Both the position numbers and the translations under genes were made by a program. From positions 76,375,186 through 76,439,185 of the forward strand of contig NC_068986.1 of assembly GCF_001194135.2 (NCBI RefSeq): a stretch of 64,000 nt of DNA, read 5' to 3'. The notes under the pieces are model-generated. The model saw nothing but the letters and a program-made list of their open reading frames with translations, was not told the DNA's origin and ran no database searches. The stretch comes from Octopus bimaculoides. Lineage: Eukaryota. This document shows, in pieces, positions 7,264 to 62,437 of the stretch; the first letter of the stretch is position 1; each line of letters opens with the position of its first letter.

Positions 7264-7311
<48 letters not shown>

Positions 7312-7497
7312 CATGCACATGCGCACACATGTCATTTAAAAAAAATATTTTGTGCTTATTCTGTTTGTTGTTTTTCTCTTAAGGTAGCCAAAGTTTTTCT
7401 AAATGTTTTTGTTGAAACAAATATTTAATATATTGACAATGTTTGGAGTTTTTGTTCTTTATTTTTCTGACAATAAAATAAATTGCAACTGTAAATT

Positions 7498-9120: not shown

Positions 9121-10394
9121 TCAGGTCATCCCATAAGTTCTGTCCGATTTTACCTTTTTTAAAATTGAATGAAATTTAATAGTATTTTAGAATGTCTAAT
9201 GGAATTAAAAATTATTTTTATGCATTTGTGTACATTTAAACTAATTAAATATTATTTTACAGAATAATAGAATTACAATTTCTTTGATTAAAACCCTTTC
9301 TAATATGGAAGTATCCAAAGAGCATTTAAGGCACAAAATGCTTTATGAGTACAAAAAAGGAAACTCTGCAGCCGAAGCGACTTGAAACATACATTCAGTT
9401 TATGGGTAAGAATGCTTGAATTAAAGAACTTGCAGAAGATGGTTTGCAAAATTCAGAAGTGGAGATTTTAGCCTTGAAGATGAAGATTGAACAGGACATC
9501 CATTTGAATTTGATGATAAGCTGCTTGAGGCATTACTTGAAGAAAATCCTGCATTATCAGTTAAAGAATNNNNNNNNNNNNNNNNNNNNNNNNNNNNNNN
9601 NNNNNNNNNNNNNNNNNNNNNNNNNNNNNNNNNNNNNNNNNNNNNNNNNNNNNNNNNNNNNNNNNNNNNNNNNNNNNNNNNNNNNNNNNNNNNNNNNNNN
9701 NNNNNNNNNNNNNNNNNNNNNNNNNNNNNNNNNNNNNNNNNNNNNNNNNNNNNNATAGACTTGTGGCTGGTGACGAAAAATGGATCTTCTATTGAAATGT
9801 TAAATGTTGTAAGCAGTCGCTTGGTAAAAGGGAAAAAGCTCAACCACAACCGAGAAGGGAACTTCTATCTGGTGGGATTGCAAAGGAGTAATTCACTTTG
9901 AATTGTTACCACCTAATGCAACAATCAATGCTCAAGTCTACTGTCAGCAATTAGAATGTTTGAACTAAGCTTAAGAAGAAAAAAACCCGCTTTAGTGAAT
10001 CAAAAAGTAGTGATGTTTCATCAGGACAATGTGTGACCCCACACTGCAAAGATCACATCACAGAAGATCGGGGAGCTTGGATGGGAAAAAATTCCTCATC
10101 CACCTTATTCTCCCGACCTTGCTCCTTCAGACTACCATTTGTTTTGTAGTTTACAGAATCATTTGGGGACATAACTTTTGCAAGCCAGGAGGAGGTCGAA
10201 ACTGAAATTTCAGAGCTCTTCTGTTTGAAACCAAAGAGTTTTACATTGATGGGATTAACAAGCTTGTAAATAGATGGAAGGAAGTCATAGATAATCAGGG
10301 AAAGTACATTGATGATTAAATTTCAATTAAATATAACATTTGATCACTTGTTTTCTTTATTCAAAATTCGGACAGAACTTATGGGATGACCTGA
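9121..10394 (+). mobile_element. Full-length defective mariner (DD34D) transposon
   Basis: ~30-bp TIRs TCAGGTCATCCCATAAGTTCTGTCCGA / TCGGACAGAACTTATGGGATGACCTGA; right TA TSD (left is CA). The transposase starts at ATG 9305 (MEVSKEHLRH...RRWFAKFRSGDFSLED) and has several in-frame stops. HQDN to SPDLAPSDYHLF spacing is exactly 34 residues. An N gap lies inside. Confidence 0.9.
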
Positions 10395-10866: not shown

Positions 10867-11667
10867 AATAATAATAATGAAGGTTTCAAAATTTGGCGCA
10901 ATGCCAGCAATTTTAAGTTAGAGGCTAAATTGATTACATCACCCCCATTGTTCCACTGGTACTTATTTTATCAACCCCAAAAGATAAAAGTTAAAGTTGA
11001 TCTCGACAGAATTTGAACTCAGAACATAAGGAGCTAGAAGAAATGTCACTAAGCATTTTGTCCTATTCAACAATGGTTCTGCCAGATAATGATAATTCTT
11101 TCTAATTTTGGCCATTACTGGACTAGTACTCGTTTAATCAACCCCAAAAGAATAAAAGGCAAAGTTAACCTTGGTGGGATTTGAAATAGTTCTTTGAAAT
11201 CATGATGATTATTATTATTATTATTATTTCTTTCTACAATAGGCACAAGGCCTGATTGATGGGAAAGGAATTAGTCAATTACATTGACCATAGTACTTGA
11301 CTGGTACTTATTTTATTGACCCCAAGAGGATGAAAGGCAAAGTTGATCCTTGCAGGATTTGAACTCAGAACATAAAGATGGACAAAATGCTTAGTGGCAT
11401 TTTTTTCCGACATGCTAATGATACTGCCACTTTGCCACCTTAAAAATAATAATCTTTTCTACTCTGGGCACAAGACCCAAAATTTTGGTGGGGAGGGATT
11501 TAGTTGATTGCGTCAACTCCTAATGCTTGACAATTACAAATTTCATCAACCCCAAAAAATGAAAGGCAAAGTCGACCTTGGCAGCATTTGAACTCAGAAC
11601 GTAAAGACAGATGAAATGCTGCTGAGCATTTTGTCTGGCATGTTAACGATTATGCTTGCTTACCACC

Positions 11668-11703
<36 letters not shown>

Positions 11704-11914
11704 GTTTCAAATTTTGGCACAAGGCCAACAAGTTTTGGGGAGGAGGCTAGTTGATTACATCGACCTTGGTGCTTAATTGGTACTTATTTTATCAACCTCA
11801 AAAGGATGGAAGGTAAAGTCCACATTGGCAGAATTTGAACTCAGGACATAAAGACAGATGAAATGCCACTGTGCATTTTGTTTGGCATGCTAATGATTCT
11901 GCCAGCATAGTGCC

Positions 11915-11950
<36 letters not shown>
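10867..11950 (-). mobile_element. Stack of five family-B SINE copies separated by (AAT)n/(TTA)n runs
   Basis: Repeated GTACTTATTTTATC/GACCCC...GAAAGGCAAAGT(C/T)GACCT...TTTGAACTCAG blocks at ~10878-11086, 11096-11190, 11228-11445, 11452-11670 and 11700-11915, all in the same orientation. Confidence 0.75.
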
Positions 11951-13315: not shown

Positions 13316-13466
13316 GCTCTCTTACGCAAACAGAGAAACTGTTGTATTGAGATTGAAATCCAGCCAGTATACCTTATACCAGATACCAACTGCTTCATTG
13401 ATCATCTGCTTGGTTTACAGAAACTAATTTTCAGTGAAAATTACACTATCTCTGTTCCACTAATTG
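13316..13466 (+). CDS. SMG6: SMG6 exon, PIN domain N-terminal part (ALLRKQRNCCIEIEIQPVYLIPDTNCFIDHLLGLQKLIFSENYTISVPLI)
   Basis: Acceptor TTTCAG|GCT; donor ATTG|GTGAGT. Contains the PIN catalytic motif PDTN and matches remembered SMG6 ELEIRPLFLVPDTNGFIDHL. Confidence 0.95.
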
Positions 13467-14042: not shown

Positions 14043-14960
14043 ACTGGCGTGGCTGTGGTAAAAAGTGTGCTTCCCAACCACATGGTTCTGGGTTCAGTAC
14101 CAACTGCATGGCATGACACCTTGGGCAAGCATCCTCTACTATAGCCATAGGTCAACTAAAGCTTTGTGAGTGGATTTGGTAGACAGAAAATGAAAGAAGT
14201 CCATTGTGTGTGAATGTTTCATTTATAAATTTTTATGCACCATGTGCTCTGTTTTTGGCGCAAAACAAAACCAGTTGCACACTCAGAGACTAACATGAAC
14301 AGTCACGGATTTAAACTGGTGGTCCACACTGACGAGGCTCAGAGTTAAATACCCAAAAGCCGAAACCTGGTTTGTGGATATCCCTAATTGCATAATATTT
14401 TTATTTGTGCTGTTAAATGTTTTAATTCTTTCTGTTTCCCTCGCATACTGTTTTTCTCTGTTATATTGGTGCGCTACGGTGGATTAATTTAAGACTTAGC
14501 TCTTATTTCTAGCAGGTAGATGCTTATTAAGCATCATTACGCTTCGTGCAAATTTATAATTCATAGCTGTTTAAAGCTATTATANNNNNNNNNNNNNNNN
14601 NNNNNNNNNNNNNNNNNNNNNNNNNNNNNNNNNNNNNNNNNNNNNNNNNNNNNNNNNNNNNNNNNNNNNNNNNNNNNNNNNNNNNNNNNNNNNNNNNNNN
14701 NNNNNNNNNNNNNNNNNNNNNNNNNNNNNNNNNNNNNNNNNNNNNNNNNNNNNNNNNNNNNATATGTATATATACACACACAATGTGTGTGTATGTGTAT
14801 CTATCTTGACAACCAGTGTTGGGTTGTTAATGTCCCCATAACTTAGCAGTTCAGCAAAAGTGACCAATAGAATAAGTACCAGTCTTTAAAAAAAAGTACT
14901 GGAGTCAATTTATTTGTGACTAAACCTTCAGTCACAAGTGAAACAAGTGAAAAATAAAAG
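14043..14960 (+). mobile_element. Family-C SINE split by a nested Penelope-like insertion (~14211-14584) and an N gap
   Basis: The SINE head is at 14043-14210 (GGCGTGGCTGTGGTAAAAAG...GAAAGAAGTCC) and the remainder at 14761-14960 (CTTGACAACC...GAAACAAGTGAAAA). The unrelated CpG-bearing insert between them carries a hammerhead motif. Confidence 0.65.
14323..14378 (+). ncRNA. Minimal type I hammerhead ribozyme with intact catalytic core
   Basis: TCCACA (stem I) CTGACGA (core) GGCT-18nt loop-AGCC (stem II) GAAAC-CTG-GT-T (stem III and GUU cleavage triplet) TGTGGA (stem I). Predicted cut after 14372. Confidence 0.8.
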
Positions 14961-16661: not shown

Positions 16662-16761
16662 TGTATATATGTATATATGTATATGATAAATAATGATGAT
16701 TATAATGACAGTGTTATAATTGTGTGTGTCTCACCTTTTGTTTTCTTTATTTTCATTGCAG

Positions 16762-16973
16762 TAATTAATGAGTTGGATGGCTTAGTCCGTGGTAACTTAG
16801 AAGGACATTATGAATCAATTGAACACAGTGACATGGTGAAGGAAAATGCAAGGTTGGCCATGACATTTCTTGAGCAGCAATTTGAACAGAAAAACCCCCA
16901 TCTAAGAGCTCAAACAACTAAAGGCACCATGCTTCAAACAATTCTCTATCGTAGTGAAGCTACTGACACTAAG
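16762..16973 (+). CDS. SMG6: SMG6 exon, PIN domain middle (VINELDGLVRG...FLEQQFEQKNPHLRAQTTKGTMLQTILYRSEATDTK)
   Basis: Acceptor TTGCAG|TA (phase 1, completing Val); donor AAG|GTAAAT. INELDGL is the conserved PIN glutamate motif. Confidence 0.95.
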
Positions 16974-17862: not shown

Positions 17863-17944
17863 GGAAACAATGATGACCTAATTCTTACCTGTTGCCTTCA
17901 CTATTGCAAAGACACTACTAAAGATTTCATTCCAAAAGGGAAAG
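17863..17944 (+). CDS. SMG6: SMG6 exon (GNNDDLILTCCLHYCKDTTKDFIPKGK)
   Basis: Acceptor CCTTCAG|GGA; donor AAAG|GTTTGA. Nearly identical to remembered SMG6 GNNDDLILSCCLHYCKD and contains the catalytic Asp. Confidence 0.95.
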
Positions 17945-20219: not shown

Positions 20220-20690
20220 ACTACTATTACTGCCACTACTACTGTCATAAAGAAGTATTATGTTGTATTGTGACAGTAAGTTGTGTAATTCGAATTGCCT
20301 TCAAACAATCATTAGTGTGTGTGTGTGCGATTACACATACATATCAATTGACATACAGACATACTTTATTTGATATGTGTGTGTGCACATGTGTATAAAC
20401 ATTTTAATATGAGGTTGGGTTAATATTGTATTGTGTGGAGGGGTGTCTCTATTTTTCTCTTTAGTCCTAGTTTTGTTCTGTCTCCATTATTACATTCTAA
20501 GTCACATTGTAAATATTGTCATTTATAAAGGATTTCACAAAAAAACAAAAAAAAATTAAATTTTACTTTTTAGTTTACATTTAAAATTAGAATTTATTGA
20601 ATTTAAAAAATGTTTATGACAAAGAAAGTTTTTCAATTGTTTTGTTTCTTTCATTAGCATTCCTTTTTTTTGTTTACTTTTGTTATTCAG

Positions 20691-20821
20691 ATGAGCCTAA
20701 CCGCATTTACCGTGATGTAGTCCTTCTCACCGATGATCGTAATTTACGTCTGAAAGCCCACACTTACAATGTTCCTGTGAAGGATGTTCCCAGCTTCCTC
20801 AAGTGGTGTAAAGTAACATGA
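20691..20821 (+). CDS. SMG6: SMG6 terminal coding exon (DEPNRIYRDVVLLTDDRNLRLKAHTYNVPVKDVPSFLKWCKVT*)
   Basis: Acceptor TATTCAG|AT (phase 1); VVLLTDDRNLR PIN motif; TGA stop at 20819-20821. Confidence 0.95.
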
Positions 20822-29671: not shown

Positions 29672-29996
29672 TTCGTGCCGGTGGCACATGAAAAGACATT
29701 CGAGCGAGATCATTGCCAGTGCCGCTGGACTGGCTCCTGTGCAGGTGGCACGTAGAATACGCCATTTCGAGCATGGCCATTGCCAGTACCGCCTGACTGG
29801 CCTTCGTGCCGGTGGCACATAAAAGCACCCACTACACTCTCGGAGTGGTTGGCGTTAGGAAGGGCATCCAGCTGTAGAAACTCTGCCAAATCAGATTGGA
29901 GCCTGATGTAGCCATCTGGTTCACCAGTCCTCAGTAAAATTGTCCAACCCATGCTAGCATGGAAAGCGGACGTTAAACGATGATGATGATGATGAG
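29672..29996 (+). mobile_element. Family-A SINE/RTE tail, well preserved
   Basis: Internal GTGCCGGTGGCAC subrepeats, GGAAGGGCATCCAGCTG and a (GAT)n tail; many CpGs retained. Confidence 0.8.
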
Positions 29997-32208
29997 TTTC
30001 TGTATAACTAATAGTATTTTTGTAGTATAACATAGTTCATTGTTGTAAGCAGCAGCACTATAAAACTGTTAAGTGGTTGCTTATCCTGTGATACAGTGTT
30101 CAAGTCTTTCAATAGTCTTGGAGAAAATAATGGGAAAATTTCTCTAATACATTCTTCACATGAAGACCGGGTCCTCCATCAACCCATTAGGGTTACAAAA
30201 CTAAGTATCACCCAATAATCCCAATTGAAGATTTCTACTAATATTTGCACTCATGGGTTTTGGATTGTGCAGTTAATATATTGAATCATTTAGCATTCAG
30301 AGTATTCTGTCAAATGTAATCCTTATTTATTCACATTATTTTGAATTAATCATCGCTTTGAGATTCCAGTGATGTGATTGCTTATTTTTAGAATGATATT
30401 GTAGGGTATGCACGTGAGGCTAGATATGGCCAGTTTGAACATAAAATGAATAAAACATTTGGGCCAGACATGGCTGGTTTAAATTCTAAAGGGTTCATAT
30501 GTGTAATAGAACCATAATAATAGGGAAAAAAGCAATAGTTTTGAGATTCCATTGAGTAATACCTTGAAATTAGGTAACAGGAATTTGCTCCTGGTGGGGA
30601 ATTTTAATGGCTGCAACTGGGAACACCGTCATATACTGAAATGTTGTGCAAGGCTGAAGAAATTGCAAGTTTCCTGAATTTCTGTTTTGTTGCTAAAATG
30701 GTAGAATCGAGACTAATTTATTTTGGTCTGTTTCAAAAATAAAGAATAAACGGTTATGAATATATTCTAGCCTTGGAGAGGAAACTGCACCCATTATAAT
30801 TTACAAGTTAGGCTGATTTGGGTTGAAAACTATGACAGTAGGAGAAAGAAAGAGGATGTCTTGATGGCAAATACTAAAGTATAATGATCCAGAGATAGCA
30901 TTAAAAAAATAGATGGATTATTGTGGTGGAAAAAGAAACTTGACCGAATTATGGTAGGTGTATCTTGCCTGGACCAAAAGTATCCAGGTTATTTAGCTAA
31001 GGGTAAAGAAGGAAGGTACACAGTTGTATCTTGCATAAAAAGAAACAGATAGGTATAACAATGCTCTTGTGGATATGAAAACACAAAAGTGTGAAGATGA
31101 ACAAGATCATTGGCAATAAGTGTGTCTTTAATGATCCCTATATAATAATAGCTGATATAAACGTTGGTTGATTCTTCAGTCATGTTTTACATTGTATAGA
31201 GAGAGTTAACATAAAGGGTGCAGGATGAGTGCACATACTAGGCTTTGTGGCAGACAATGAGTAAAATGCTACTCTCACACCCACTGAGAGAGAAAAAAAT
31301 CATAGAGATAGAGAAAGAGGAGGAGATATACAAACAAGAAATTTCATTTAAGATAATAAATATTTTACTGTTGAAAATTAGTTTTTATTTCATTATTTTT
31401 TTATAAGCACCAATAAATTTAATAAAAGTTACATTATACTTTATGTATATCATATTTCTGATATTACTCATGGTGGCAAAAGCATATTTACTATCATATG
31501 ACTGGTAACACTCTAGTATTGTATAATGCTAGGTGGAAGTGTTGGACAAAGATATTCAATGATGTCTAGAGAATATTATCCAGTTTCAGCTATATGATGG
31601 AACTCAGTAGCAGATACCTCATAGGAGACATTATATGAAGTAATTAAGGTTTTTATATCAAATCAAGTAAGATGTCTTGGAATCTGGAATTGTTATTTGT
31701 GGGTCTAGGAAACATTTTGAAAGGCCGAAAATAGTTTTAGCACAATTGGCAAAAACATTATGACGGGATTGTAACAAAAACATTTGTGTTGTGACTGCCA
31801 TCAATAAACACGAAGACAGGGAAAGCTGCAAGAGCTTGTTATTGCAATACAAATAAATACACAACACTGAAATGGTACAAGGATGTGTTATTTGAAAGTT
31901 GTTAATTAGGTGAATAGAGTAAGGAAATTATAGGCATCTCAAATTAATGAAGATACAGAATACAGTTAATTAGATGTGATTGAAATATATAGTAGGTCAT
32001 GGTACTATAAATAAGTAGATTTCTGATAAGACAACTTCTAAAAGTAATATTTAACAAGCCTAAATGACTCCAGCTTACTGTTACTGAAGGACTTTTGATA
32101 GGAATCCATTTTTTTTTTCATGTGGTTCATAGTGAATTGAAGCTATTTATATTAAATGACTAAAATCAGATTTAGGATAAAAAGCAAAAGCACTTCAAAT
32201 TAGGTTCA

Positions 32209-32622
32209 TGCTTTTTACATGCCACTGGCTCCCGTGCCAGTGGCATGTAAAAAGCACTATCCGAATGTGGCTGATGCCAGTACCCCTTGACTGGCCCCAT
32301 GCCGGTGGTATGTAAAAAGTACAATCCAAACGTGGCTGATGCCAGTACCCCCTGACTGGCTCCCGTGCCAGTGGCATGTAAAAAGCACTATTCAAACATG
32401 ATCGATGCCAGGCCCACTAGACTGGCTCCTGTGCTGGTGGCACATAAAAAACACCCACTACACTCTTGGAATGGTTGGTCTTAGGAAGGTCATCCAGCTG
32501 TAGAAATATTGCCATATCAGATTGGATCCTGGTGCAGCCACTGGTTCTCCAGACCTCAGTGAAACCGTCCAATCCATGCCAGCATGGAAAATGGATGTTA
32601 AACGATGATGATGATGATGATG
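32209..32622 (+). mobile_element. 5'-truncated family-A element with a fold-back 5' junction
   Basis: ~65-70 bp internal subrepeats and a (GAT)n tail; perfect 21-bp inverted repeat at the 5' end. Confidence 0.8.
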
Positions 32623-39995: not shown

Positions 39996-40341
39996 TATGC
40001 AGTGCCGGCACAAGTGCATTTTATGTGGCACTGGCATGAATACATTTTACATGGCACTGGCATGAGTGGTGTGTGTGTATTTATCTCCTTGTATCTTAAT
40101 GGATCAGAAAAAGAGACTGATAGAATAAATACCAGACTTTAAAATAAATAGATACTGAGGCCAATTCATTCAATTAAAACCCTTTATTTTAAAGTCTGGT
40201 ACTTATTCTATCAGTTTCTTTTTCTGATCCATTAAGATACAAGGAGAAAAACACACACACACATACACACCACTCATGCCAGTGCAGTGTAAAATGCATT
40301 CATGCCGGTGCCACATAAAATACACGTGCCGGTACTGCATA
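39996..40341. repeat. Long inverted duplication (arms ~153 and ~159 bp, 34-nt spacer)
   Basis: 39996-40148 is the reverse complement of 40183-40341, apart from scattered, mostly transition mismatches and a microsatellite length difference. Confidence 0.9.
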
Positions 40342-49042: not shown

Positions 49043-51462
49043 TATTCATTCATCTTTTCTGTAAGAAACACTGATGACTGAAGTTATATAAGAAGCTATA
49101 TTATAATCTATATACTTTGATGTCACAACAACCAATTGTAAAAGATTGTATATTTATTAGGTTTTTCAAGAATAGAACATTATCTTGTCAGGTTGAAACA
49201 ATTGTCTTATAATTAGAGCAATTAGAAACTCTGTAGCTTCGTATATACTGACCATAGGCAGTGGTGTTGCCAAGATGTGGTACATGTGTGGATTAAAGCT
49301 GACCTGCATTCTTCATTAAATTTCTCCTTAATCAGCTGTATATATATATATATATATATATATGGGGAAAATAAAGTTTATCATTTTGTCAAATGTGTTC
49401 TACATTTTCACAATTTTATGCACAGCTAATTTCTGGTGATGTGGTTGAACTGCTATAGTTTGGTTAGATAAATGTTTGTAATAACGGTGCATAGTATACA
49501 GTGAATAGAGTAAAACCTGGAGGCCAAGGTAACTAGTGATGGTTACCTTGACAGCTACATGTTCATCAGGAGTGTTGGAAGAAGAATTTGATAAGTTCAG
49601 TTAGTGTTCATGTGACTGGAAGATAAATGTTGTTTTGATTTATAGGCATATATATGTGTATACTCCCACACACTCCTGGATCTATGTATGTGTCTGTACT
49701 ACTGTGTTTGTGAGTGCCTTCTATCAAAGAGGCTGTCTGTAAATGCATGGCAAGGCTGTGTGGTTAAGAAGTTTACTTCACAATTTCAGAGTTTTGAATT
49801 TGTCCTGACTTTATGGCACCTTGGGCGAGTGTTTACTATCAGAGCCATGGGTTGAGCAAACCTTTGCAAGTGAAACTTGGTCGACAGAAATTGTGTAAAA
49901 CTTGATAGAGATTTTGTTGACTGATTGCATGGATAATTTTATTATTTACTAGCTTGTAACCAAAGCAACACCACCACTTTTGTTCTTCCTCACTCCCAGA
50001 CAAAGGGCAAAGGTTCAAAATGTTAGTGTTCACTCTTTATAGTAGTTGTATTTACTGAACTCTCTTATTGATGTATATATGTCCACTGGTCATAATTGTG
50101 TTTACACGAGGTATGTTTATGAAAAATTTTAGATTTTATTTAGGTCATTATTCTGGGTTTTTTTTTTAATAACAATTCCCAATAGCACAGACTTTCTATA
50201 ATAAAAGTGCACTGAAATTGACTCATGAATGTAAGATGAGATGGTATCTCGATGCACAGGTGTAAAATGTTACATTTCATAATTTTGAAGGTTTTGAACT
50301 GACATAGATTTGGAAGAGACTACAAATAAGACAGTTTGAAAGGTAATACCTGTAAACAAATGAATTGACATGAAAGTTCAAGACTTTTTCATGTTATCAA
50401 CACTAACACATCTACAAATGTTAGTTTTAAGTATACATGCAATATACCTTAGATTCATAATCATGTTGTCCTCTAAATATCAAGGTCATTGTATGTCTCA
50501 CTATGTGTGTGTAATTTGGCAACAAGCTCTTGGTAAAGTTCATTAAAAGCATCAGATCACCCCCCCCACTCCCATATAGATTCATTAATTTCATACAGAC
50601 AATTTCTAAAAGTTAACTTTATAGTCATCAGTAATTAGCCTACATAGAAAACAAAATTTAAAGCTCTCAAAAATTTGATGTTGCATTTCTAATGTTTTTT
50701 TCATATTAATGGGGTTTGAACAGTTTTACAAATCATAATGTTTTCAAGAATTGTTGGAGTAACCGACTTGGTGGTTTTAATATATCTAATTCAGTCCTCC
50801 ATTCCTTGTCATTGGCTTTAAGTTCTAACATTAGCATCATCATCATCATCATTATTATCTTATGCCCCTTTTTTTTATCCCATGCTGACATGGGTTGGAC
50901 GGGTCTCACAGTGCCTCATCATTTACTATAGCCCTTTGCATCTGGCAAAAACCTGATACCTTTGCACAAGAGAGGCCATGTCTGACAAACTAAAAAGTCC
51001 CTGTCTTATCTATGTTAATTTGGCGTGGTCTTTTTTTTTTTTTGTATAGTTTTCACAGCAGGATGCTCTTCCTTTTATTAAACACATAGCATAGATTGAT
51101 AGATTGGATGCAATTTAATCAGACCACCACTAGAAAGTTTGATTGTCTCAATCAAGACTAAAGAGTCCCTTCCACTCTGTGTCTCTTCTGTTTAAGTAAA
51201 TTAAATGTCTAACTTTTTACTTAGCTTCTTGATATCCTCCTTTCTCCTTATCTTCCAAACCTCTTTACCTCATTCACTACTGTGTCATTTCTTATCTCTT
51301 GCACTGACACTGGTCAGTTGGTTACTTGTAGCAGTTTGTCTCTAAAGAGTGCTAATGTTCTTTTATGTTACCTTGATTGAAGTATCCATGACTTGTATGG
51401 AAGCAAACTCATAAAACAATTTACTAAGAAAACTGTAACAAGAATTGTTACGGCCATATCAC

Positions 51463-51583
51463 GCTTACGGCCATATCACGCTGAGAGCACCGGTTCTCGT
51501 CCGATCACCGAAGTTAAGCAACGTTGAGCCTAGTGAGTACTTAGATGGGTGACCGCTTGGAAAACCTAGGTGCTGTAAGCATT
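51463..51583 (+). rRNA. Full-length 5S rRNA sequence (probably a retroposed copy)
   Basis: GCTTACGGCCATATCACGCTGAGAGCACCGGTTCTCGTCCGATCACCGAAGTTAAGCAACG...GATGGGTGACCGCTTGG...GGTGCTGTAAGCATT. The ends pair (GCTTAC/GTAAGC), and box A and box C are recognisable. It is followed by A15 rather than an oligo-T terminator, and it is solitary, not in a tandem array. Confidence 0.9.
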
Positions 51584-51598
51584 AAAAAAAAAAAAAAA

Positions 51599-51750
51599 TC
51601 CAAGGTCGACTTTGCCTTTCATCCTTTCGGGGTCGATAAATTAAGTACCAGTTACGCACTGGGGTCAATGTAATCGACTTATTTCCTTTGTCTGTTCTTG
51701 TTTGTCCCCTCTATGTTTAGCCCCTTGTGGGCAATAAAGAAATAAGAAAA
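51599..51750 (+). mobile_element. Headless family-B SINE body fused to the 5S copy
   Basis: AGGTCGACTTTGCCTTTCATCC...AGCCCCTTGTGGGCAATAAAGAAATAAGAAA is collinear with the body and tail of the complete copy at 55144-55378. Confidence 0.85.
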
Positions 51751-53058
51751 TTTTGACTTCTACCTTTACTTGCTCACAAATAAGTACGAACATGGTTTTT
51801 ATCAAAGTTTGGGGTAAATTTGAGTGTCGACGTTTTTGTTTCAAACTGAAAGTTCTCCTTTTATTGTTTTGTTAATGGCAGTAGAGATTAGCTATCAAGT
51901 GTTATTTCTCTCTCTAATGTTACAAGAACTGACTTGAATACTATTAATATTTAATCATTTTACAAATGCCACTGATGAGAGAAAAGACAAATATAAGCCA
52001 CAATAGAGGCTCTGATTTCAAAGCTTTACTTAAGGGACTTTAATTTTGAATCATACATAATGATTTCATTCATGTTTTCTAAACATGTGATCTCAGCAAT
52101 TGTTGGTAATTAATTTAGCTTTTAACATTTTGAAGCTCCTTTGGCAAATAATTATGCTACTATACTAGGTACATATGTTCACATTTTCTTGAGCCCTGTT
52201 GTCATCTTTGATACCCAATTTCTCTTTTAAATGCTCTAGTTCTTTTCAGTGTATTCAGATCTGTTATGTGTAGAGCAGAATTGAACTTCAACTTTTCTTC
52301 TTTTTATCACATCTTTCTCTTCTGTCATCCTTTCCCACTTATCTACAATGGATATCAGCATTGAATGCTCCCCATTTTAATCAGGAGTGCTGTCAACTTT
52401 GGTACCAATGATTAATGCATGCCTTTTCCCTTACTGCAATTGTTATGTGTTCTTATGAATTTTGTTTTTGTCCTCTTAATGACTTAACGAGAGGAGGAAA
52501 GCAACATCCTTGACTATTCCAGGGCCTCTAAAACTGATGAGAGGAAGTAGAAGTTATCTTCAAATTTGGCCTCTATTCTTATAGTAGTATGGACTCTACT
52601 AAACTCATGCAAGAACCAGATGGTAGGGTTACACCAGCCAATGAATTAAATTTACTGCCTAGGGACAAGAACAGTCCTTATGACTGCTTTCCATGCAGTT
52701 TCACCCTAAGCTATAGTAGAAAACATTTTCCCAATTTACTACTCTTTGGGATCAAAACTGAAGCTACATTGTTGAGGTGAACTTCTAAAACACCTGTCTA
52801 TGTCTTCAGATCTACAGTGGTATTGAGTACTTATATTCTTCTGTTCCTTTTTGATACTCTTTACTCTTTTACTCTTTTACTTGTTTCAGCCATTTGACTG
52901 TGGCCATGCTGGAGCACCGCCTTTAGTCGAGCAAATCGACCCCAGGACTTATTCTTTGGAAGCCTAGTACTTATTCTATCGGTCTCTTTTGCCAAACCAC
53001 TAAGTTACAGGGACGTAAACACACCACCATCGGTTGTCAAGCGTTGGTGGGGGGACAA

Positions 53059-53099
<41 letters not shown>

Positions 53100-54317
53100 N
53101 NNNNNNNNNNNNNNNNNNNNNNNNNNNNNNNNNNNNNNNNNNNNNNNNNNNNNNNNNNNNNNNNNNNNNNNNNNNNNNNNNNNNNNNNNNNNNNNNNNNN
53201 NNNNNNNNNNNNNNNNNNNNNNNNNNNNNNNNNNNNNNNNNNNNNNNNNNNNNNNNNNNNNNNNNNNNNNNNNNNNNNNNNNNNNNNNNNNNNNNNNNNN
53301 NNNNNNNNNNNNNNNNNNCTTACCACACAGCCACTCCTTCTTTTTAATGATTCAAATTTTCAGATTAATTTTTACTTCTTTCACCATTATTAAAAAAAAC
53401 TCCATAATAGTTAATGTAAATTTTTCAATGTGGTTAGCTAACTGGAAAAACTAATGTTATGCAAGCATAAGTTTTATTCTCATCCTATCTAAAACAAGAA
53501 AGTTAATGAAAACAAAGAAATTCTCTTGTATGTTTCTCTTCATAGCTTTTGCATTATCAAATTCTTTCATCTGTTGTTGAAAAATAAACAGCCTATAATA
53601 AATTATTTGGAGGCAATTACCCATCATCACAACTCAGAACACATTCATACACAAGAGCAATTCTTGTAAGGAGAAACTGTCCAGAGTGTAAAATATGTAT
53701 TTTCTTCTTGTGAGTCCAAGTTGCCAATTTCTTCAATTGCAGCTATGTAATTTGTTTCCTTCCACCCATCTTTTCTCAGCAGAGGTTGTTACAAGTCATA
53801 TTCTTGAAGACAAAGCTGTTATAAACATTGTGTGCATTTCTTTCAACTCTCATCATCATAACCATTTTCTTTGCTTTTCCATGTTAGTGTGGGGTGGAAC
53901 TTGTTCTTAGTTGATGTTACTGCTTCCCTAGACAGGTCAAGGATATTTCATTTTTGTTATGATTTCTATGGTTGGATGCTCTTCCTAATGCCACTTTACA
54001 AAATGGATGTACTTTATTATGGCACCGCCCTATTGAAAGTATTTTGATCTCCAACTTACTATAATTCCGTTACTTCTGTACTGTTTACCCTTCATAACTC
54101 CATGTTCATAGTTGCTAAGTCTGATAATGCTATACATTTGTGTGTATGTGTGTGTATAGGTGAAGGCGTGGCAGTGTGGTAAGAAACTTGTTTCCCAACC
54201 ACTTAGTACTGGGTTCAGTCCCATTGTATGGCACCTTGGCAAGTGCTTCTACTATGCCTTGTGCTGACCAAAGCCTCGTGAGTGAATTTGGTAGATAGAA
54301 ACTGAAAGAAGCCCATC

Positions 54318-54366
<49 letters not shown>

Positions 54367-55143
54367 TGTGTGTGTGTGTTTGGTTGTCCCCTCTACCACT
54401 TGACAATCAGCATTGCTGTATTTATGTGCCTGTAACTTAGCGGCTTGGCAAAAAGAGACCAATAGAATAAATACCAGGCCATCTTTTTGTCTGATGAGAA
54501 AGAACACTGCTCTGGATCCTTTTCAGAGTCTCAAAGATTGATGGGAGGAAATCATTCTCAAACTGGAAACCTGGATTAAATGTGGCAACAGTGTTAACTT
54601 TACTAAAGGTGTACACTAGTCCTAACCAGGAGTACCTTCCTCTTCACTCTGAAACCTTATATTCTTCACTCATTTTCCATGTCTTTAGTTTGTTCACCAG
54701 CAATTTCAACTACTCCCTCTGGGCTTTCATATCTTCTGTCAATTGCTAATTCCTAAAAGTCTTGTTAACATGTAATAGTAAACATTGGGGAATATCTAGA
54801 GAGAGAAAAATGTGTGATGGAAGTCTCTAGAAAGTGCTGACTTGATATTGGATAACCTTGGTTGTTTGGTTGATGTGGAAGCAGTACTCTGTAAGGATAA
54901 ATAGGAATTGATTAATCATGAGGCAATTTAGTTGACATAGTAACGTTGTACATACATCATTTTATATATACATGCATGTCCTTGTATTTACATTATCAAA
55001 TGTGTCTATAGAAAATTATATACAATATGTTTTCATCATCATTTAGCATCTGTATTCCAAGCTGACATGGGCTGAACCTTTTGACAGGCTTTGACAATTT
55101 AAAAGACTGTGTCAAGCTCTAACGTCAGTTTTGGCATAGTTTC

Positions 55144-55378
55144 TTATTTCTTTATTACCCACAAGGGGCTAAGCATAGAGGGGATAAACAAGGACAGACA
55201 AACGGATTAAGTCAATTACATCGACCCCAGTGTGTAACTGGTACTTAATTTTTCGACCCTGAGAGGATGAAAGGCAAAGTTGACCTCAGTGGAATTTGAA
55301 CTCAGAACGTAACGGCAGATGAAATACCGTTAAGCATTTCGCCCAGCGTGCTAACGTTTCTGCCAGCTCGCTGCCTTT
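55144..55378 (-). mobile_element. Complete family-B tRNA-derived SINE with 18-bp TSD
   Basis: Minus strand: head GGCAGCGAGCTGGCAGAAACGTTAGC...GTTCAAATTCC, body, tail AATAAAGAAATAA. TSD CAGTTTTGGCATAGTTTC at 55126-55143 and 55389-55406. Confidence 0.9.
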
Positions 55379-58109
55379 GATCCTTCTGCAGTTTTGGCAT
55401 AGTTTCTGTGGATGGATGATCTTTCTAAATATTAGATATATTCAATCTTGGTGTGAAAATATAAATCAAAAGAGTGGACAAACCAAAAGAGCTTTGAAAG
55501 CTTAGAGAGTAAAGTATTTGCTCAACTAGTTTGCATTTCTTAACTGTTAAGAACAATATGTTATTAACTAAATAATGGATTCAGATTTTGGAATAAAGCC
55601 AGCAATATGAGGGGTGGGGTAAGTTAATTGCATTGACCCCAGTACTCAACTGGTAGATGAAAGGCAAAGTTGACCTTGGCAGAATTTGAACTCAGAATGT
55701 AAAGAGCCAGAACAAATGCCGCTAAATATTTTGTCTGATGCATTAACAGCTCTGTCACTTTGCCGCCTTTTGTCTACTAAATAATGTAATGTACTTACTA
55801 CTCAGTGTTCCTCTCCAGTCTAAACTTTACATCCAGTGGATTTATTGTCAACTCTAAAAAGATTAAGTGAGAACAATGAAATACTATCCGATATCTTGTT
55901 CACTGCCCTTGTTTCTGTGTCAAATGCATATCTTAACTAACTATTAAAGAGACCTTGTTTTAAATATATCTTTTATAGTAGCTATACATAGATACACAAA
56001 CATACTGACAGTCTTAATCCATTCAAAATATTTCTATATCCTTATTTAAACATTCACCATTCATTGCTATTGTTTCATCTATAAAGCTACTGTCAATTTT
56101 TCAGTGCTACAACAAAAGAAACCATTCTCTTATCAACTTGTTTTAACTATTACAAATATTTTCAGTTAAAACTACTCCATTTTTTTATTTTTTACAGTTA
56201 ACATTTAAATCTTTCGAGGTAGACGTAGGTCATTCTTGCTATTTGCTCAAGCTGGTTTAAAAAAGAGGACATTGTTTATATATATTTATACATGTGTACA
56301 TCTATTTACAATCAACATGCTTAAGTGGATTAAATACAGCATTCTGCCTTCATTAGAAAAAGTGTTAATATGTCAGAAGTGGTTTTTATGTAAGATACAC
56401 TAATCTGGTTGTTGTTTAACCAATTAAGCACTATTTCAGTGATAAACAAGCAAAGTACAAATGAATAGAAATCATACAGATGCTCTGTGACTATTTTGTT
56501 ATCATGTTGCTTAATTCCTTGTCGGTCCCGATCAAGCAGAAATTATGATCAAAATTATTCCAGCCACATCTTATTCAGGCATAGCATAGCTACAACCAAA
56601 TTATCAGTTGTGTTCAGGGATCACATAGAGTTTTGCTCATTGGTTCATGTATTTTCTTTTATCATGTACTTGTTTCAGTCATTTGGTTGCAGCCATGCTG
56701 GAGCACTGCCTTGAAGGGTTCTAGTTGAAGGAATCAACCCCAGTACTTATTTTTTTAAAAATCTGGTATTTATTCTGTTGATCTTTTTTTTGCCAAACTG
56801 CCAAGTTAGGAAGACATAAACTAACCAACACTGGTTGTCAAACAGTGGTGGATGACAAACACGGGGACACACACATACACATGCACATACGTATATGCAT
56901 ATACATATATGTGTGCACACACATCATCATCATTTAGCGTTTGCTTTCCATGATGGCATGGGTTAGACGGTTTGACTGAAACTGGTAAGCTGGAGGGCTA
57001 CACCAGCTTCCAGTCCAATTTGGTATGATTTCTATGGCTGGATGCCCTTCTTAACGCCAACCACTCCAAGAGTGCAATGGGTGCTTTTTACATGCCACTG
57101 GCACAGGTACCAGTTACATGACACTAGCATCGGCTATGACTATTTCACTTGGCTTGACAGGTCTTCTCAAGCATAGCATGTTGCCAGAGGTCTTGGTCAC
57201 TTATCATTGCCTCCGTGAGACCCAATGTTCAAAGAGACTTCTCAATATATATATCTATATATATATCTTTATCTTTTACTTGTTTCAGTCATTTGACTGC
57301 AGCCATGCTGGAGCACCGCCTTGAACGATTTTAGTCAAACAAATCAATCCCATGACTTATTTTTTTAAAGCCTTGTACTTATTCCATTGGTCTCCTTTGC
57401 CGAACTACTAAGTTATGAGGATGTACACAGCAACACTGGTTGTCAAATGGTGGTGGTGGTGGTGGGGGAAAACATAGACACAAAGAGACACACACATAGA
57501 TATATACATATATATATATATATATNNNNNNNNNNNNNNNNNNNNNNNNNNNNNNNNNNNNNNNNNNNNNNNNNNNNNNNNNNNNNNNNNNNNNNNNNNN
57601 NNNNNNNNNNNNNNNNNNNNNNNNNNNNNNNNNNNNNNNNNNNNNNNNNNNNNNNNNNNNNNNNNNNNNNNNNNNNNNNNNNNNNNNNNNNNNNNNNNNN
57701 NNNNNNNNNNNNNNNNNNNNNNNNNNNNNNNNNNNNNNNNNNNNNNNNNNNNNNNNNNNNNNNNNNNNNNNNNNNNNNNNNNNNNNNNNNNNNNNNNNNN
57801 NNNNNNNNNNNNNNNNNNNNNNNNNNNNNNNNNNNNNNNNNNNNNNNNNNNNNNNNNNNNNNNNNNNNNNNNATATATATTACAGTTACGTTGAAACAAG
57901 TGATACAAGAAAGTGCAGCATTCACGACTAAACATTTGTGGAGTAAATGATGAGCTAATTTGACTAAGCAACATACCATGCGTCCATTTGGAGTATTCCA
58001 AGCCCTAACCTGTCATGGAAAATTGGGGGTGGGTGGGGTATGTGGTTTTTGAATGCACCAAAAAGCTGTCAGTGGATATACTCTCCTTTGTGGCAGTCGG
58101 CACTGCATC

Positions 58110-59565
58110 TTACACGACCCATCATCTGAAGTTTTGACACCTCCTTTGGGTTTGTTGTCCTTTCTCACTCATAAAGTAAATTTGGAGGAACTGTGGTTGT
58201 TCATTTGTGAGTAACAGGGAACCAATGATGTGATAGCCTTGCCTTTGAACTTTGAACATCGACGTAAATCCATGTTCAATTATCTCCTTAGATGCACCAA
58301 ACGATGTCCTTTGAAATGCAGAATTGTACTGTGTGATATTGTTCAGGAAATCTTTTGACTGGATGGAAGTGCCTTCCAGAAATCCATAAGAGGTTGGGGA
58401 GGAGCTGGCAATGTTAACTTACCGCCTGAGCAGCACATCCCATTAGTTTCATCTGGAAATTTTAAAGCTTTGCACAAATGACAATTTTAGTTTAGCACAC
58501 CAGTTTGGACAAAATTATCATTTTTATAAGAATGGGATGGATCATATCTGAAAGCAGCTCCAGGAGTTGTGAAGAATGAATTTGTATGTAGTCNNNNNNN
58601 NNNCTGAAAGCAGCTCCAGGAGTTGTGAAGAATGAATTTGTATGTAGTCTGTTTCTGAGAGCTATTCTATTGGACCTCTGTGTAATCTGGCATACTAAAT
58701 GTTGTTTTAATGATTCAGCATTAAGTGCGCTGCAGCATGCCTTTGCTGATCTTGGAAAAGTCTCATCTGCCTTCTCTCTTGAGACTGCATGTGACTTGCT
58801 GCAGCATGCATTTGCTGATCTTGGGAAAGACTCATTTCCCTTCTCTCTTGAGATTCCATCTGATATGCTGCAGCATGCCTTTGTTGATCTTGAGAAGGTC
58901 TCATCTCGCTTCTGTCTTGAGACTCCATTTGACATGCTGCTGCATTTGTTTGCTGATCTTGAGAAAGTCTCATCTCTTTTCTCTCTTGAGACTCCATTTG
59001 ATGTGCTGCAGCATGCGTTTGGTGATCTTGAGAAAGTCTCATCTCCCTTCTCTCTTGAGACTCTCACGTTCAGTTCTCTACAATCTTCCTTGCTTTATAC
59101 TTATTTCTGGAGAGATTACGTCTTTTCTTTGGTGGCATATTTTTTTCAACATTGTGAACAAAAATTATGAACATAGAAAAAATTACACATTAATCTCTAT
59201 TTTTGTAAGCAGTTGTATATATGTAGTATGTCTTTATTTTTGCATGCAGTATAAATTAACCAAATAGAAGCACATGTATGAACTGTTAATTTTCTTTAGA
59301 AATAAGATGATCTTAGCATTATCACATTAGATTTAAAAATGAAACAATATTATATCACATTGTAATATAGATCTCATTCTTTCACTTTTGACATGTAATA
59401 CCAAACCAGTGCCTATGTTATGTTGTTTTAATCCAAATGAAAAAAACAATTACATGTTGACACTCTTGGGGTCTGATACTATTACCTAGTAAAATTTAAT
59501 TTGATTTGGTCAAGCCGTTTGAAAATGCAAAGACAGACAGATAAAGAATTTTATATATATATAGA
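58110..59565 (-). mobile_element. Helitron relic: 5' terminus plus N-terminal part of the Rep/helicase ORF
   Basis: The minus strand starts TCTATATATATAAAA...TCTGTCTGTC...AAACGGCTTGACCAAAT at 59565. Charged 23-aa repeats are followed by CKALKFPDETNGMCCSGGK, YNSAFQRTSFGA, FKVQ..GYHIIGSLL and FLQIYF, classic Helitron N-terminal motifs; frameshifted. Confidence 0.85.
58730..59065. repeat. 69-bp tandem repeat (~5 copies) inside the Helitron ORF
   Basis: CTGCAGCATGC anchors recur every 69 nt (58730, 58799, 58868, 58937, 59006); the unit translates on the minus strand as MRLSQDxQxHAAAxQMESQERxE. Confidence 0.95.
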
Positions 59566-59863: not shown

Positions 59864-60660
59864 AGGGTGGGTGAAAAGTAAGTAGGCATTAAGGATTGTT
59901 AATAAAATCCATATTTCTTTTACAAATTTATTGAAACAAATTGTACATGTTCTTTATTACATGGGAAAGTGAAAGTAAATCTTCATAATTCAACGTAAGC
60001 ACCAATGGCATCAACAAGTTTCTTCAAACAGCCAGGGATGGAATGAACAAACTTCTGAAGGATGTCATCTGGGATATCATTGAGAACCTCCTGAATCCAT
60101 ATCTCCAAGTCCTTCTGTGTGCAAGGTTTTGTCTTGTGCACCTCTTTTGTGTAACCCCACAAGTAAAAATCACATGGAGTGAGATCTGGACTTCTTGGAG
60201 TTCTGGACTTCTTGGAGTTCTGGACTTCTGGACCTCTGCAGTCACAGTCTTCAAGTTTTAGCTCCTGCACATAATGGGGTTTCCATGGACGAAAATTCAA
60301 TTCTTTATGCAACACCGTATGTATTGTGTGTTTTGTTAGTCCACTTTCATGAGGTGCTTGATGTGTTGATTTTTGCAGGCTGCAATTAAATATTTCCTGC
60401 ACTGTTGCCACATTCTCTGCTGATTGGGATGTGGTTGGATGACAACTTCTTCTTGCATTGTTCTCTGAGCCTGTAGTCATCAGCTTTGGATGACAACTTG
60501 TTATTGTCTCTGGATGTAGTGTTGTATGCTTACCTTTCCATGCATGCCACCATCTCTGAACCAAAACAATGGAATTCCACACTTTATAGTGTGCTGCTAT
60601 CTTAGCTCACTCCTGAACAGTCAAGCGACCGACCATCTGGAAAATAAGATATAAGAAAAT
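59864..60660 (-). mobile_element. Internally deleted Tc1/mariner transposon
   Basis: ORF 59983-60582 has HTH-region motifs (LHKELNFRPWKPHYVQEL) joined directly to PRSPDLTPCDFYLWGY; the catalytic middle is missing. One TIR-like end (TA|TAGGGTGGGTGAAAAGT) lies at ~59864. Confidence 0.75.
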
Positions 60661-60955: not shown

Positions 60956-62437
60956 TCATCATCATCATCATCGTCGTCGTCGTCGTTTAACGTCCACTTT
61001 CCATGCTAGCATGGGTTGCACGATTTGACTGAGGACTGGTGGACCAAGAGGCGACGCCAGGCTCCAATCTGATCTGGTAAGGTTTCTATAACTGGATGCC
61101 CTTCCTAACGCCAACCACTCCGAGAGTCTAGTGGGTGTTTTATGTGCCACCGGCATGAGGGCCAGTCAGGCGGTACTGGTGACGGCCAAGCTCGAAATGG
61201 TATATTTTACGTGCCACCTGTACAGGAGCCAGTCCATCGGCACTGGCAACAATCTCGCTCAAATGTCTTTTAACGTGCCACTGGTAACGATCAACGGCTA
61301 CGCTCGAAATGGTGTATTTTACGTGATATATATATATATATATATATATAGCAGAAAAGTTTTTCTGTTTAATTCAAACATTTCTCAGTTACAAAGTGCA
61401 ACAGTAATGATAAAAAATCAACCAGAGGTCCCTCATTGATTTAGTCTGGTCTAACTAAGTAATTTTATGATTATTGTTACAAAAATAAAAAGCTTTCCCC
61501 TCTTATATTTTTCTTTAGCAGACTTAGATTTTTTTCTCTAGTTTTACTTATTTTTCCATTGTTACATTTTCTTTCTCTTGCTATTTTTACTAATATTTAT
61601 TATTACAGCTGCTAACTTCTATAAATTTACAATGACCACTGCAGCTGCAACTTTCTCCCCTCCTGTGTGCACTATAATGATTTTGCCATTAAGTATCTGG
61701 AAATTCCTTTACTAAATTTTCCAAGATGTTTTGTTTTGAATCTCTTATGTGATTATTTGAAAGAACTATTCTGTTGTAAGGTGTATGTAAATACAAAGGA
61801 GATAATGACTCTTCTATGAATGTAAATACCCTGAGTTAATGGCGAGTCAGTAAATGTGGATTTGATCTTTATCACTCCACCTTACATTATCCTTTCTCCT
61901 TTCCAAATCTTGACAGTTGTAGGAATCAATGTAAAGAATGTATTTGCATTCTGAAGCTGTTTATTTATGTCTTGGAATTTTAAGTTCAACTTCTCTATCT
62001 TTTATCTTTTACTTGTTTCAGTTACTGGACTGCAGCCACACTCAGGCACTGCCTTGAAGTGTTTAGTTGAATGAACCGACCCCAGTACTTATTTTTAAAG
62101 TCTGGTACTTATTCTATCATTCTCTTTTGCCAAACTGCTAACGTACAGGGATGTAAATTAACCAACACCGGTTGCCAAGTGGTGGTAGAGGACAAACACA
62201 ACTCATACACATAGACACACCACACACATACCTTTGATCTTTTCCTCACACTGGGAGACTGTACCAACAAAGAATCTGTTATGTTGTTACTCAGCTTTTT
62301 GTACAACACATTTCACATTACCCATCTTCGTTTTGGAGTGGAAATCTTTTAGTTCCCTACATCATACATGTTAACACTGACTTACAGTAAACCCTAACTG
62401 ACACTCTTTATGCCCACATGTTTGCAGTCTGTTCTTA

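Follow-up and report, generated by a model that had tools for sequence, protein, structure and literature searches.

Exchange of the promoter-bearing head is a known route to a new SINE promoter, and at the octopus locus described here it takes an unusually clean form. In Helicoverpa armigera, HaSE3 carries a 5S head in place of the tRNA head of HaSE1, with which it has the body and a LINE-type tail in common (PMC3272025), and in the coelacanth CoeSINE5 has likewise a 5S head in place of the tRNA head of CoeSINE4 while body and tail are common to both (PMC5786205). A template switch from SINE RNA to 5S rRNA has been proposed for HaSE3 as well as for CoeSINE5 (PMC3272025, PMC5786205). For the DeuSINEs (AmnSINE1, SINE3; Nishihara et al. 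2006), two papers that summarise the earlier work describe how a tRNA-SINE received a 5S sequence at its 5' side, which then assumed the promoter role, and explain this by a SINE-to-5S template switch as well (PMC4824008, PMC4758252). The mammalian U6/LINE-1 and 5S/LINE-1 chimeras (Buzdin-type chimeras) arise when one LINE-mediated event fuses a small Pol III RNA to the 5' side of a retroelement that is itself 5'-truncated; in the human 5S/L1 chimeras the 5S is mostly in antisense and ends prematurely at nt 46 or 90 (bioRxiv 10.1101/2025.02.02.635956). The 5S-derived SINEs listed in a 2024 review all come from fish, insects, mammals or reptiles (PMC10946416).

In the 64-kb stretch of Octopus bimaculoides DNA that was analysed as a whole (the window), we found a 5S rRNA, TT, A15, a headless SINE body and a SINE tail following each other in this order (Table 1). 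A first-pass annotation had read 5S, A15 and then SINE body and tail from the letters, and this anatomy was borne out by Rfam for the head and by alignment to a complete reference SINE for the remainder. Like HaSE3 and CoeSINE5, the octopus chimera has a 5S head on the body and tail of a tRNA-headed SINE. It differs from these two in its host, which is a cephalopod, and in a 5S that is complete to the transcript 3' end (TT); a pure A15 joins this 5S to the SINE part. As in the DeuSINEs, 5S sequence stands 5' of the SINE part; however, part of the tRNA head is kept there and the body is a Deu domain, whereas the octopus chimera keeps at most a few box B bases and has a CORE-like body. Unlike the human 5S/L1 chimeras, the octopus 5S is in sense orientation and full length, as in U6/L1, and the architecture as a whole is that of a U6/LINE-1-type chimera, with a full-length sense small RNA 5' of a 5'-truncated retroelement whose 3' end is intact. 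The U6/LINE-1 and 5S/LINE-1 chimeras have target-site duplications (TSDs) of 7-20 bases and do not propagate, whereas no TSD was found for the octopus chimera, and its 3' partner is a SINE, with a tail through which it could propagate. By its label, the RepeatMasker class SINE/5S-Core-RTE combines the same modules, a 5S head and a CORE body. Alu elements consist of a left monomer, an A-rich linker and a right monomer, with a single Pol III promoter in the 5' unit. The octopus chimera would resemble them in keeping the A-tail of its 5' unit as an internal linker and in having one Pol III promoter, in the 5' unit, but its 5' unit is a whole 5S rRNA and not a SINE monomer, and its 3' unit is without a promoter of its own.

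Table 1. The chimera, its parts and related features (positions in the window)
Feature	Positions	Strand	Basis
5' TSD candidate TAAGAAAA of the first-pass annotation	51425-51432		Only shared 8-mer, not significant
Extra partial copy of the 5S 5' end (5S nt 3-17)	51448-51462	+	Sequence; Rfam puts 5S position 1 at 51463
5S rRNA, retro-copied head	51463-51581	+	Rfam RF00001, model positions 1-120
TT, left over from the U-tract that terminates the Pol III 5S transcript	51582-51583	+	Sequence
Pure A15 linker, interpreted as post-transcriptional oligo(A) tail of the 5S RNA	51584-51598	+	Sequence
5'-truncated SINE, CORE-like body and complete 3' tail ending ...GGGCAATAAAGAAATAAGAAA	51599-51749	+	Identity to 55145-55300 (-)
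First T4 run past the 5S start, in flanking DNA; possible Pol III terminator	51751-51754	+	Sequence
Complete reference SINE with tRNA-like head, same family	55145-55388	-	Alignment, flanking TSD

The full-length 5S rRNA of the head scored 105.9 bits with Rfam, against a gathering score of 38 (E = 3.2e-22), and it is the only one in the 64-kb window, where no second 5S-like match appeared even at E <= 1 and there is no array. Standard base pairs are present at 32 of the 34 consensus pairs, the broken ones being C51481/A51521 and C51540/A51561, and A51521 falls within the box A region. Between AAGUUAAGC and GGGUGACC..UG, none of the strongly conserved consensus positions has been lost. The internal control region, by Xenopus numbering, presumably spans about 51511-51560. 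Judged by its sequence, this 5S-derived 5' head would carry box A, IE and box C, the elements of the type 1 internal promoter that characterizes a SINE3 head. A gene-like score of this kind and a nearly intact fold might belong to a working dispersed 5S rRNA gene (orphon) with a SINE fragment downstream by chance. We regard such a gene as practically negligible here, however, given two broken consensus pairs, a partial duplication of the 5' end, a single copy within 64 kb, and no T4 run right after the 5S but only TT and then A15. The oligo-T terminator and the tandem array of functional 5S rRNA genes are both absent. TT and oligo(A) following the 5S where a terminator is missing demonstrate that the 5S part derives from RNA and not from a 5S gene, its 3' end being that of a post-transcriptionally tailed Pol III transcript.

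The absence of an oligo-T terminator after the 5S had been noticed in the first-pass annotation, and we agree with it. On the + strand, the first T4 run comes directly behind the SINE tail, 170 bases downstream of the 5S, and a Pol III transcript from the 5S start to this run is predicted to measure ~292 nt, in keeping with the ~290-nt read-through RNA suggested earlier. By its sequence the chimera was then called a potential new master element, but at least two base pairs of its 5S are broken, and one of the bases concerned is in the box A region. The same annotation let the complete 5S begin at 51448. A full 5S is indeed present, but the bases at 51448-51462 are an extra partial copy of its 5' end. 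Overlooked at that time was a 17-base direct repeat of the 5S 5' end, with the unit TTACGGCCATATCACGC present twice (51448-51464 and 51465-51481), and the GCT at the repeat junction is both 5S nt 18-20 and nt 1-3.

The SINE part has 151 bases, beginning at 51599/51600, and 133 of 147 aligned bases (90%) are identical to the minus strand of 55145-55300. Its start was placed by alignment with nine older family copies in the window and corresponds to CCAAGGTC, immediately downstream of the box-B-like GAGTTCAAATTC in the family consensus. Consequently the tRNA-like head with boxes A and B is absent, and the SINE part does start where that head ends, as had been proposed. The tail of the chimera reads ...TAGCCCCTTGTGGGYAATAAAGAAATA. 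The head-bearing reference SINE is found 3.6 kb from the chimera, between the two copies of a perfect 19-base TSD, CAGTTTTGGCATAGTTTCT (55126-55144 and 55389-55407), and the chimera shares body and tail with this bona fide SINE copy. A CORE-like domain occupies about 51603-51641 of the chimera. The CORE stretch AGGTCGACTTTGCCTTTCATCCTTTCGGGGTCGATAAAT has been retained in about 10 older copies in the window, and 36 of its 39 bases are identical in a SINE-like element of another animal (metagenome contigs, three found). CORE-SINEs are characterised by a central domain of about 60 bases that is conserved across animal phyla. In the literature the octopus SINEs OR1 and OR2 are assigned to CORE-SINEs (PMC4824008, PMC4758252), and tRNA-Core elements account for 31% of O. 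bimaculoides repeats (PMC8967140 Table S2). Because neither ARAGORN nor Rfam recognised the SINE heads of the window as tRNA, we call them tRNA-derived on the basis of box motifs and the literature. The two SINE families of the window have specific, non-poly(A) tails, (ATT)n or AATAAAGAAATA; neither a LINE bearing the tail of the chimera nor any poly(A) retrocopy with TSDs turned up in the window.

We think it probable that the 5S and SINE parts were already united as RNA or cDNA when they inserted, in one piece, and we infer that a template switch joined them. A LINE reverse transcriptase would have started, as it normally does, at the 3' tail of the RNA of a tRNA-type CORE-SINE of the octopus, copied the tail and the body, and left this template near the body/head border, beside the AAAT of box B. 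It would then have resumed on a 5S rRNA transcript with two remaining terminator U residues, entering it by the oligo(A) tail. Such an acceptor transcript would be an oligoadenylated surveillance intermediate; in yeast, oligoadenylated reads at the mature 5S 3' end have been documented (PMC3102002). Once the whole 5S was copied, a second jump may have occurred at the 5S 5' end via the 3-base GCT match, so that nt 17-3 were re-copied, and the extra copy of the 5S 5' end and the GCT microhomology fit such a second template jump. The product would be 5S - TT - A15 - SINE body - SINE tail, with a 5S (type 1) head where the tRNA (type 2) head had been. Although truncated at its 5' end, the SINE part is complete in its tail, which the LINE enzyme copies first. 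Since the SINE families here have specific non-poly(A) tails and poly(A) retrocopies were not seen in the window, a 5S riding on the SINE tail would need no LINE recognition of its own.

TSDs were searched up to 550 bases upstream using exact k-mers and gapped local alignments, with shuffles as controls. None around the whole element was significant, no flank match rose above the shuffled controls, and the search for a TSD pair around the 5S-A15 unit was also negative. The best flank match was the 8-mer TAAGAAAA, which the first-pass annotation had offered as a TSD candidate, with a local alignment score of 20 compared to 18.9 +/- 2.9 for the shuffles. Its 5' copy is separated from the element by 15 bases, CTGTAACAAGAATTG (51433-51447), a 15-mer unique in the window, and its 3' copy overlaps the SINE's own tail, as TAAGAAA also ends the reference SINE; we consequently abandoned this candidate. 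An alternative TSD abutting both ends, AAGAATTG versus AAGAAAATTTTG, needs two indels and is unpersuasive. The TSD flanking the whole element that is expected of SINE3 is thus missing. This lack of a convincing TSD, when the neighbouring family copy has a perfect one, speaks against insertion as one piece. The internal A15 speaks against it too, since an older 5S retropseudogene whose A-tail had received a SINE would show exactly such a run. To our knowledge, U6/LINE-1-type chimeras are usually without poly(A) between their parts, which also counts against the one-piece reading.

Two independent abutting insertions are the main alternative, and we find them rather unlikely. In a first variant, a poly(A)-tailed 5S retropseudogene made by an L1-type LINE was later joined by a 5'-truncated SINE, which inserted within the A-tail or at its end; in a second, a 5S-poly(A) retrocopy was primed at the box B AAAT of a resident SINE, whose head was lost by target-site deletion. 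An A15 behind a small RNA is the usual tail of an L1-type retropseudogene, and the deletion variant predicts that no TSD surrounds the whole element. O. vulgaris has LINEs of the types L1 (10.8 Mb) and L1-Tx1 (56 Mb, with 421 recent insertions), together with SINEs classed as 'U-L1' (PMC13282606), so that small RNAs might plausibly be mobilised in octopus in a poly(A)-dependent way. The sequences that flank just the SINE part, AAAAAAAT (51592-51599) and AAGAAAAT (51744-51751), match at 7 of 8 bases, but chance alone should give a match of this quality, the SINE tail being A-rich and the reference copy likewise ending in AAGAAA. However, both variants need two events within 0-1 base of each other and in the same orientation. 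With 11.7% of the genome made up of SINEs, or about one SINE every 2 kb (PMC13282606), we put the chance for any 5S retrocopy roughly at <1%, as long as A-tails are not strongly favoured as targets. The 5S-A15 unit without a TSD pair, the absence of any SINE head remnant upstream and the absence from the window of poly(A) retrocopies with TSDs also argue against two insertions.

Within the one-piece reading, we favour a daughter copy of a 5S-headed CORE-SINE family over a primary one-off event. The chimera is probably a copy of a 5S-headed SINE family that is already in automated octopus repeat catalogues, and such a copy would be transcribed from its 5S promoter and mobilised via the inherited tail. 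Among O. bimaculoides repeats, SINE/5S-Core-RTE represents 0.021% and SINE/5S 0.030% of copies (PMC8967140 Table S2), and of the five cephalopods compared only O. bimaculoides has SINE/5S-Core-RTE (PMC8967140). Four SINE/5S families, together 9.83 Mb, are known from O. vulgaris, one of them with recent insertions (PMC13282606), and the giant squid has about 24,000 5S-derived loci (PMC6962438). By their class labels, these published cephalopod tables favour a family catalogued by automated pipelines. For such sequence at 0.35% of a genome, about 225 bases are expected per 64 kb, which is consistent with one 300-base copy, and we did find only one copy of the chimera in the window. That the locus is the primary product of the head swap, or a nearly pristine early daughter with the mechanism preserved in its sequence, we consider decidedly unlikely. 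If it were so, an oligoadenylated 5S surveillance intermediate would have seeded a new SINE promoter, the extra 5' copy would record the second jump, and the element would be a present or recent Pol III-transcribed master and the founder of the first SINE3 lineage characterised in molluscs.

The gain or exchange of Pol III heads by SINEs has mostly been inferred from old and eroded family consensus sequences. At the octopus locus the joints are still visible: a 5S that is whole down to the 3' end of its transcript, an intact oligo(A) linker, the break between head and body, and a re-copied 5' end with microhomology. If a family were confirmed genome-wide, this would be a clean promoter replacement, from type 2 (tRNA) to type 1 (5S), and the described 5S-headed SINEs would be extended to cephalopods, with genomes about 12% SINE. 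If instead the chimera is a one-off or a nested insertion, it would be an ordinary by-product of LINE activity.

Because the assembly is gapped, with six N runs in the window, and because both partners are repeats, an assembly artefact or a later DNA-level rearrangement might have joined an unrelated 5S retrocopy and SINE. We hold this to be highly improbable. The gaps nearest to the chimera are at 14585-14761 and 53100-53318, the element itself is in uninterrupted sequence, and the 15-base homopolymer is shorter than usual assembly k-mers. Moreover, this reading would make coincidences of the shared orientation, the exact head/body junction and the transcript-type 3' end of the 5S. The junction pattern did not arise by chance in 100 shuffles (0 matches). 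It also had no hit in JGI metagenomes or in the GTDB genomes, which says little, as control patterns mark these collections as lacking the organism: they gave only the three contigs with the CORE-like SINE of another animal, none among viral contigs and, for the SINE tail, none in GTDB.

The chimera is located ~30.7 kb downstream of the SMG6 stop codon, and a search with the SMG6 C-terminus found no cephalopod protein. Three open reading frames of the window, among them one of 42 aa across the junction, had no exact protein match, and the junction frame gave no candidate by homology search. Elsewhere in the window, a Helitron called by eye at 58.1-58.5 kb was not confirmed by Pfam, and a mariner-like open reading frame has 71% identity to an O. 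bimaculoides protein.

The 5S-oligo(A)-SINE composite at 51448-51749 (+) is real and neatly preserved. The first-pass annotation had described it as a 5S rRNA followed by 15 A and a SINE body and tail lacking its head, and this was borne out by the Rfam match and by alignment to a complete, head-bearing copy of the same SINE ("family B") at 55145-55388 (-). The 5S part scored 105.9 bits against the Rfam model (gathering score 38, E = 3.2e-22), and a permissive scan across all 64 kb returned no second 5S-like sequence. Because two of its 34 consensus pairs are broken (C51481/A51521 and C51540/A51561, each of which an A to G change would mend), leaving 32 standard base pairs, this is a slightly decayed 5S copy rather than a pristine gene. 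The annotation had the complete 5S begin at 51448; the 5S is indeed whole, but its first base lies further downstream, after an additional, incomplete copy of its 5' end. The unit TTACGGCCATATCACGC is found twice in tandem (51448-51464 and 51465-51481), and the two repeats join on GCT, which is both nucleotides 1-3 and nucleotides 18-20 of the 5S.

Features of the composite and of the neighbouring gene (window positions)
Feature	Position	Strand	Remark
Second, partial copy of 5S 5' end	51448-51462	+	Tandem repeat with 5S start
Full-length 5S rRNA	51463-51581	+	Rfam 5S model positions 1-120
TT	51582-51583	+	Directly 3' of 5S
A15 run	51584-51598	+	3' of TT, then one T
SMG6/EST1A orthologue, last four coding exons	13352-13465, 16737-16958, 17863-17943, 20690-20815	+	C-terminal PIN domain

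From 51600 onward the composite is identical to the complete SINE at 133 of 147 bases, up to a common tail (...AATAAAGAAATAAGAAA) that ends at 51749. With its tRNA-like head and a perfect 19-base target-site duplication (TSD), the complete copy qualifies as a bona fide retroposon. When nine older relatives in the window were aligned as well, the SINE part of the composite was seen to start at CCAAGGTC, directly 3' of the box-B-like GAGTTCAAATTC, so that the SINE has lost its Pol III head but keeps body and tail intact. As had been noted earlier, the 5S lacks a terminator at its 3' side; in the + direction a T4 run is first reached at 51751-51754, one base past the SINE tail. Given that position, an RNA started at the 5S would be predicted to measure about 292 nt and to include the whole tail. 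A working 5S gene was ruled out, the terminator being missing.

Pol III transcripts end in one or two terminator U residues, whereas a copy of the gene would run into the T-run and spacer. The 5S here ends in one or two U residues left over from the terminator and added oligo(A), without T-run or spacer, and was therefore derived from RNA. In yeast, surveillance studies have reported reads with oligoadenylation at the mature 5S 3' end (PMC3102002). The composite also resembles the U6/LINE-1 template-switch chimeras (bioRxiv 10.1101/2025.02.02.635956), in which a full-length, sense small RNA lies on the 5' side and a retroelement, 5'-truncated with its 3' end complete, on the 3' side. Because the anatomy fits these chimeras and the 5S came from RNA, we favour a template switch and insertion in a single piece. 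In this scenario, copying by a LINE reverse transcriptase would have begun at the SINE tail and proceeded through the body; close to the AAAT of box B the enzyme would have changed template to the A-tail of a 5S transcript, read through the entire 5S and, at its 5' end, made one further jump via GCT microhomology.

The A15 run also resembles a retropseudogene tail, and two adjacent insertions are the serious alternative: either a 5S-poly(A) retropseudogene in whose A-tail a truncated SINE later landed, or a 5S retrocopy primed within a resident SINE whose head was lost. The octopus does have L1 and L1-Tx1 LINEs and a U-L1 SINE class (PMC13282606), and the element as a whole has no enclosing TSD. 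The TSD proposed earlier (TAAGAAAA) does not hold, since its upstream copy lies 15 bases off the element and the TAAGAAA in its downstream copy recurs as the tail of the other SINE; k-mer and gapped searches around the element, up to 550 bases upstream, gave nothing better than shuffled controls. Of the features of 5S-headed SINEs (SINE3), this locus has the 5S-derived head and lacks the TSD. However, two insertions would require two hits no more than one base apart in the same orientation, neither unit is fitted by a TSD pair, and the SINE head is absent upstream. Moreover, the tails of both SINE families in the window are specific and not poly(A), and a search of it for poly(A) retrocopies with TSDs found none, so that the 5S would have been inserted more economically by hitch-hiking on the SINE tail. 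The composite is thus probably a single retro-insertion. Mis-assembly joining 5S and SINE is unlikely, because the element lies within uninterrupted sequence.

Replacement of a tRNA head by 5S on an existing SINE is already known from HaSE3/HaSE1 in a moth (PMC3272025) and CoeSINE5/CoeSINE4 in the coelacanth (PMC5786205), and from the 5S and tRNA heads of the DeuSINEs (summarised in PMC4824008 and PMC4758252); each time the authors' explanation is that the template was switched from the SINE RNA to 5S rRNA. Compared with these, the octopus copy is unusually intact, with the whole 5S including its terminator remnant, has a pure oligo(A) linker, and comes from a cephalopod. In a 2024 review, the only groups listed as having 5S-derived SINEs are fish, insects, mammals and reptiles (PMC10946416).

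The published class tables tip the balance toward a family over a one-off event. In a comparative repeat study, SINE/5S-Core-RTE was found in O. bimaculoides only, at 0.021% of repeat copies; SINE/5S made up 0.030% there (PMC8967140 Table S2). The former label names a 5S head, a CORE body and an RTE tail, of which the head and body modules are present in the composite. In the curated annotation of O. vulgaris, 9.83 Mb are assigned to four SINE/5S families, of which one shows recent insertions (PMC13282606), and about 24,000 5S-derived loci are on record for the giant squid genome (PMC6962438). If SINE/5S makes up 0.35% of a genome, 64 kb should contain about 225 bases of it, which agrees with the single 300-base copy in this window. 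A chimera that arose only once would very rarely be met in a given window, a consideration whose weight would depend on how many windows were scanned. Judging from class labels, the composite probably represents a single member of a CORE-SINE family with 5S heads, present in automated octopus annotations yet undescribed.

A CORE-like stretch in the SINE body shares 36 of 39 bases with a SINE from an unrelated animal, found in metagenome contigs. The JGI contigs with this SINE-like element (Ga0126334_10062192, 1900-1960; Ga0126326_1014486, 3085-3145; Ga0126331_1020632) look like host DNA, and the SINE domain looks conserved across phyla. The octopus SINEs OR1 and OR2 have been assigned to the CORE-SINE superfamily (PMC4824008, PMC4758252), and tRNA-Core SINEs make up about 31% of O. 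bimaculoides repeat copies (PMC8967140 Table S2). Two pile-ups, at 7030-7960 (-) and 10910-11925 (-), consist of copies from an older CORE-SINE family of tRNA type whose tails are (ATT)n. In each, several copies, complete or truncated, follow one another head to tail over about 1 kb, as if elements had repeatedly inserted into the simple-repeat tails of others or the region had been amplified locally in tandem. In both "family B" insertions AGAAA directly follows the tail ...GAAATA (51745-51749; 55126-55144 / 55389-55407), in the complete copy as part of the perfect 19-base TSD, which suggests a target preference or microhomology priming between target and RNA 3' end.

The composite lies in transposon-rich intergenic DNA about 30.7 kb downstream of the gene for SMG6/EST1A, a nonsense-mediated decay factor, whose PIN domain was confirmed with Pfam. 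The closest database relative of the SMG6 exons is an oyster protein (60% identity), and the protein search returned no cephalopod relative of this C-terminal part. A mariner/Tc1-like transposase remnant at 59983-60606 (-), a 207-aa open stretch without Pfam match, is closest to O. bimaculoides XP_014768905.1 (71% identity); the mariner-like ORF itself occupies 59983-60582 (-). Two overlapping open stretches at 58125-58486 (-) resemble by eye the N-terminal region of a Helitron protein, a candidate for which the Pfam scan gave no match. A 69-base tandem repeat at 58729-59063 (4.9 copies, 85% matches) is open in several frames on both strands, giving spurious ORFs of 110-200 aa. A further repeat family, which contains a 66-base tandem unit, occurs at four sites (32224-32454, ~29700-30040, 57055-57320 and 61090-61440). 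At 40086-40245 a hairpin-like segment resembles plant microRNA precursor models on either strand, with scores far under their thresholds, and probably represents a short inverted-repeat transposon. Assembly gaps at 9570-9754, 14585-14761, 53100-53318 and 57526-57872, which vary in length and in several cases are flanked by TA/TATG-type microsatellites, are typical of a scaffolded short-read assembly.
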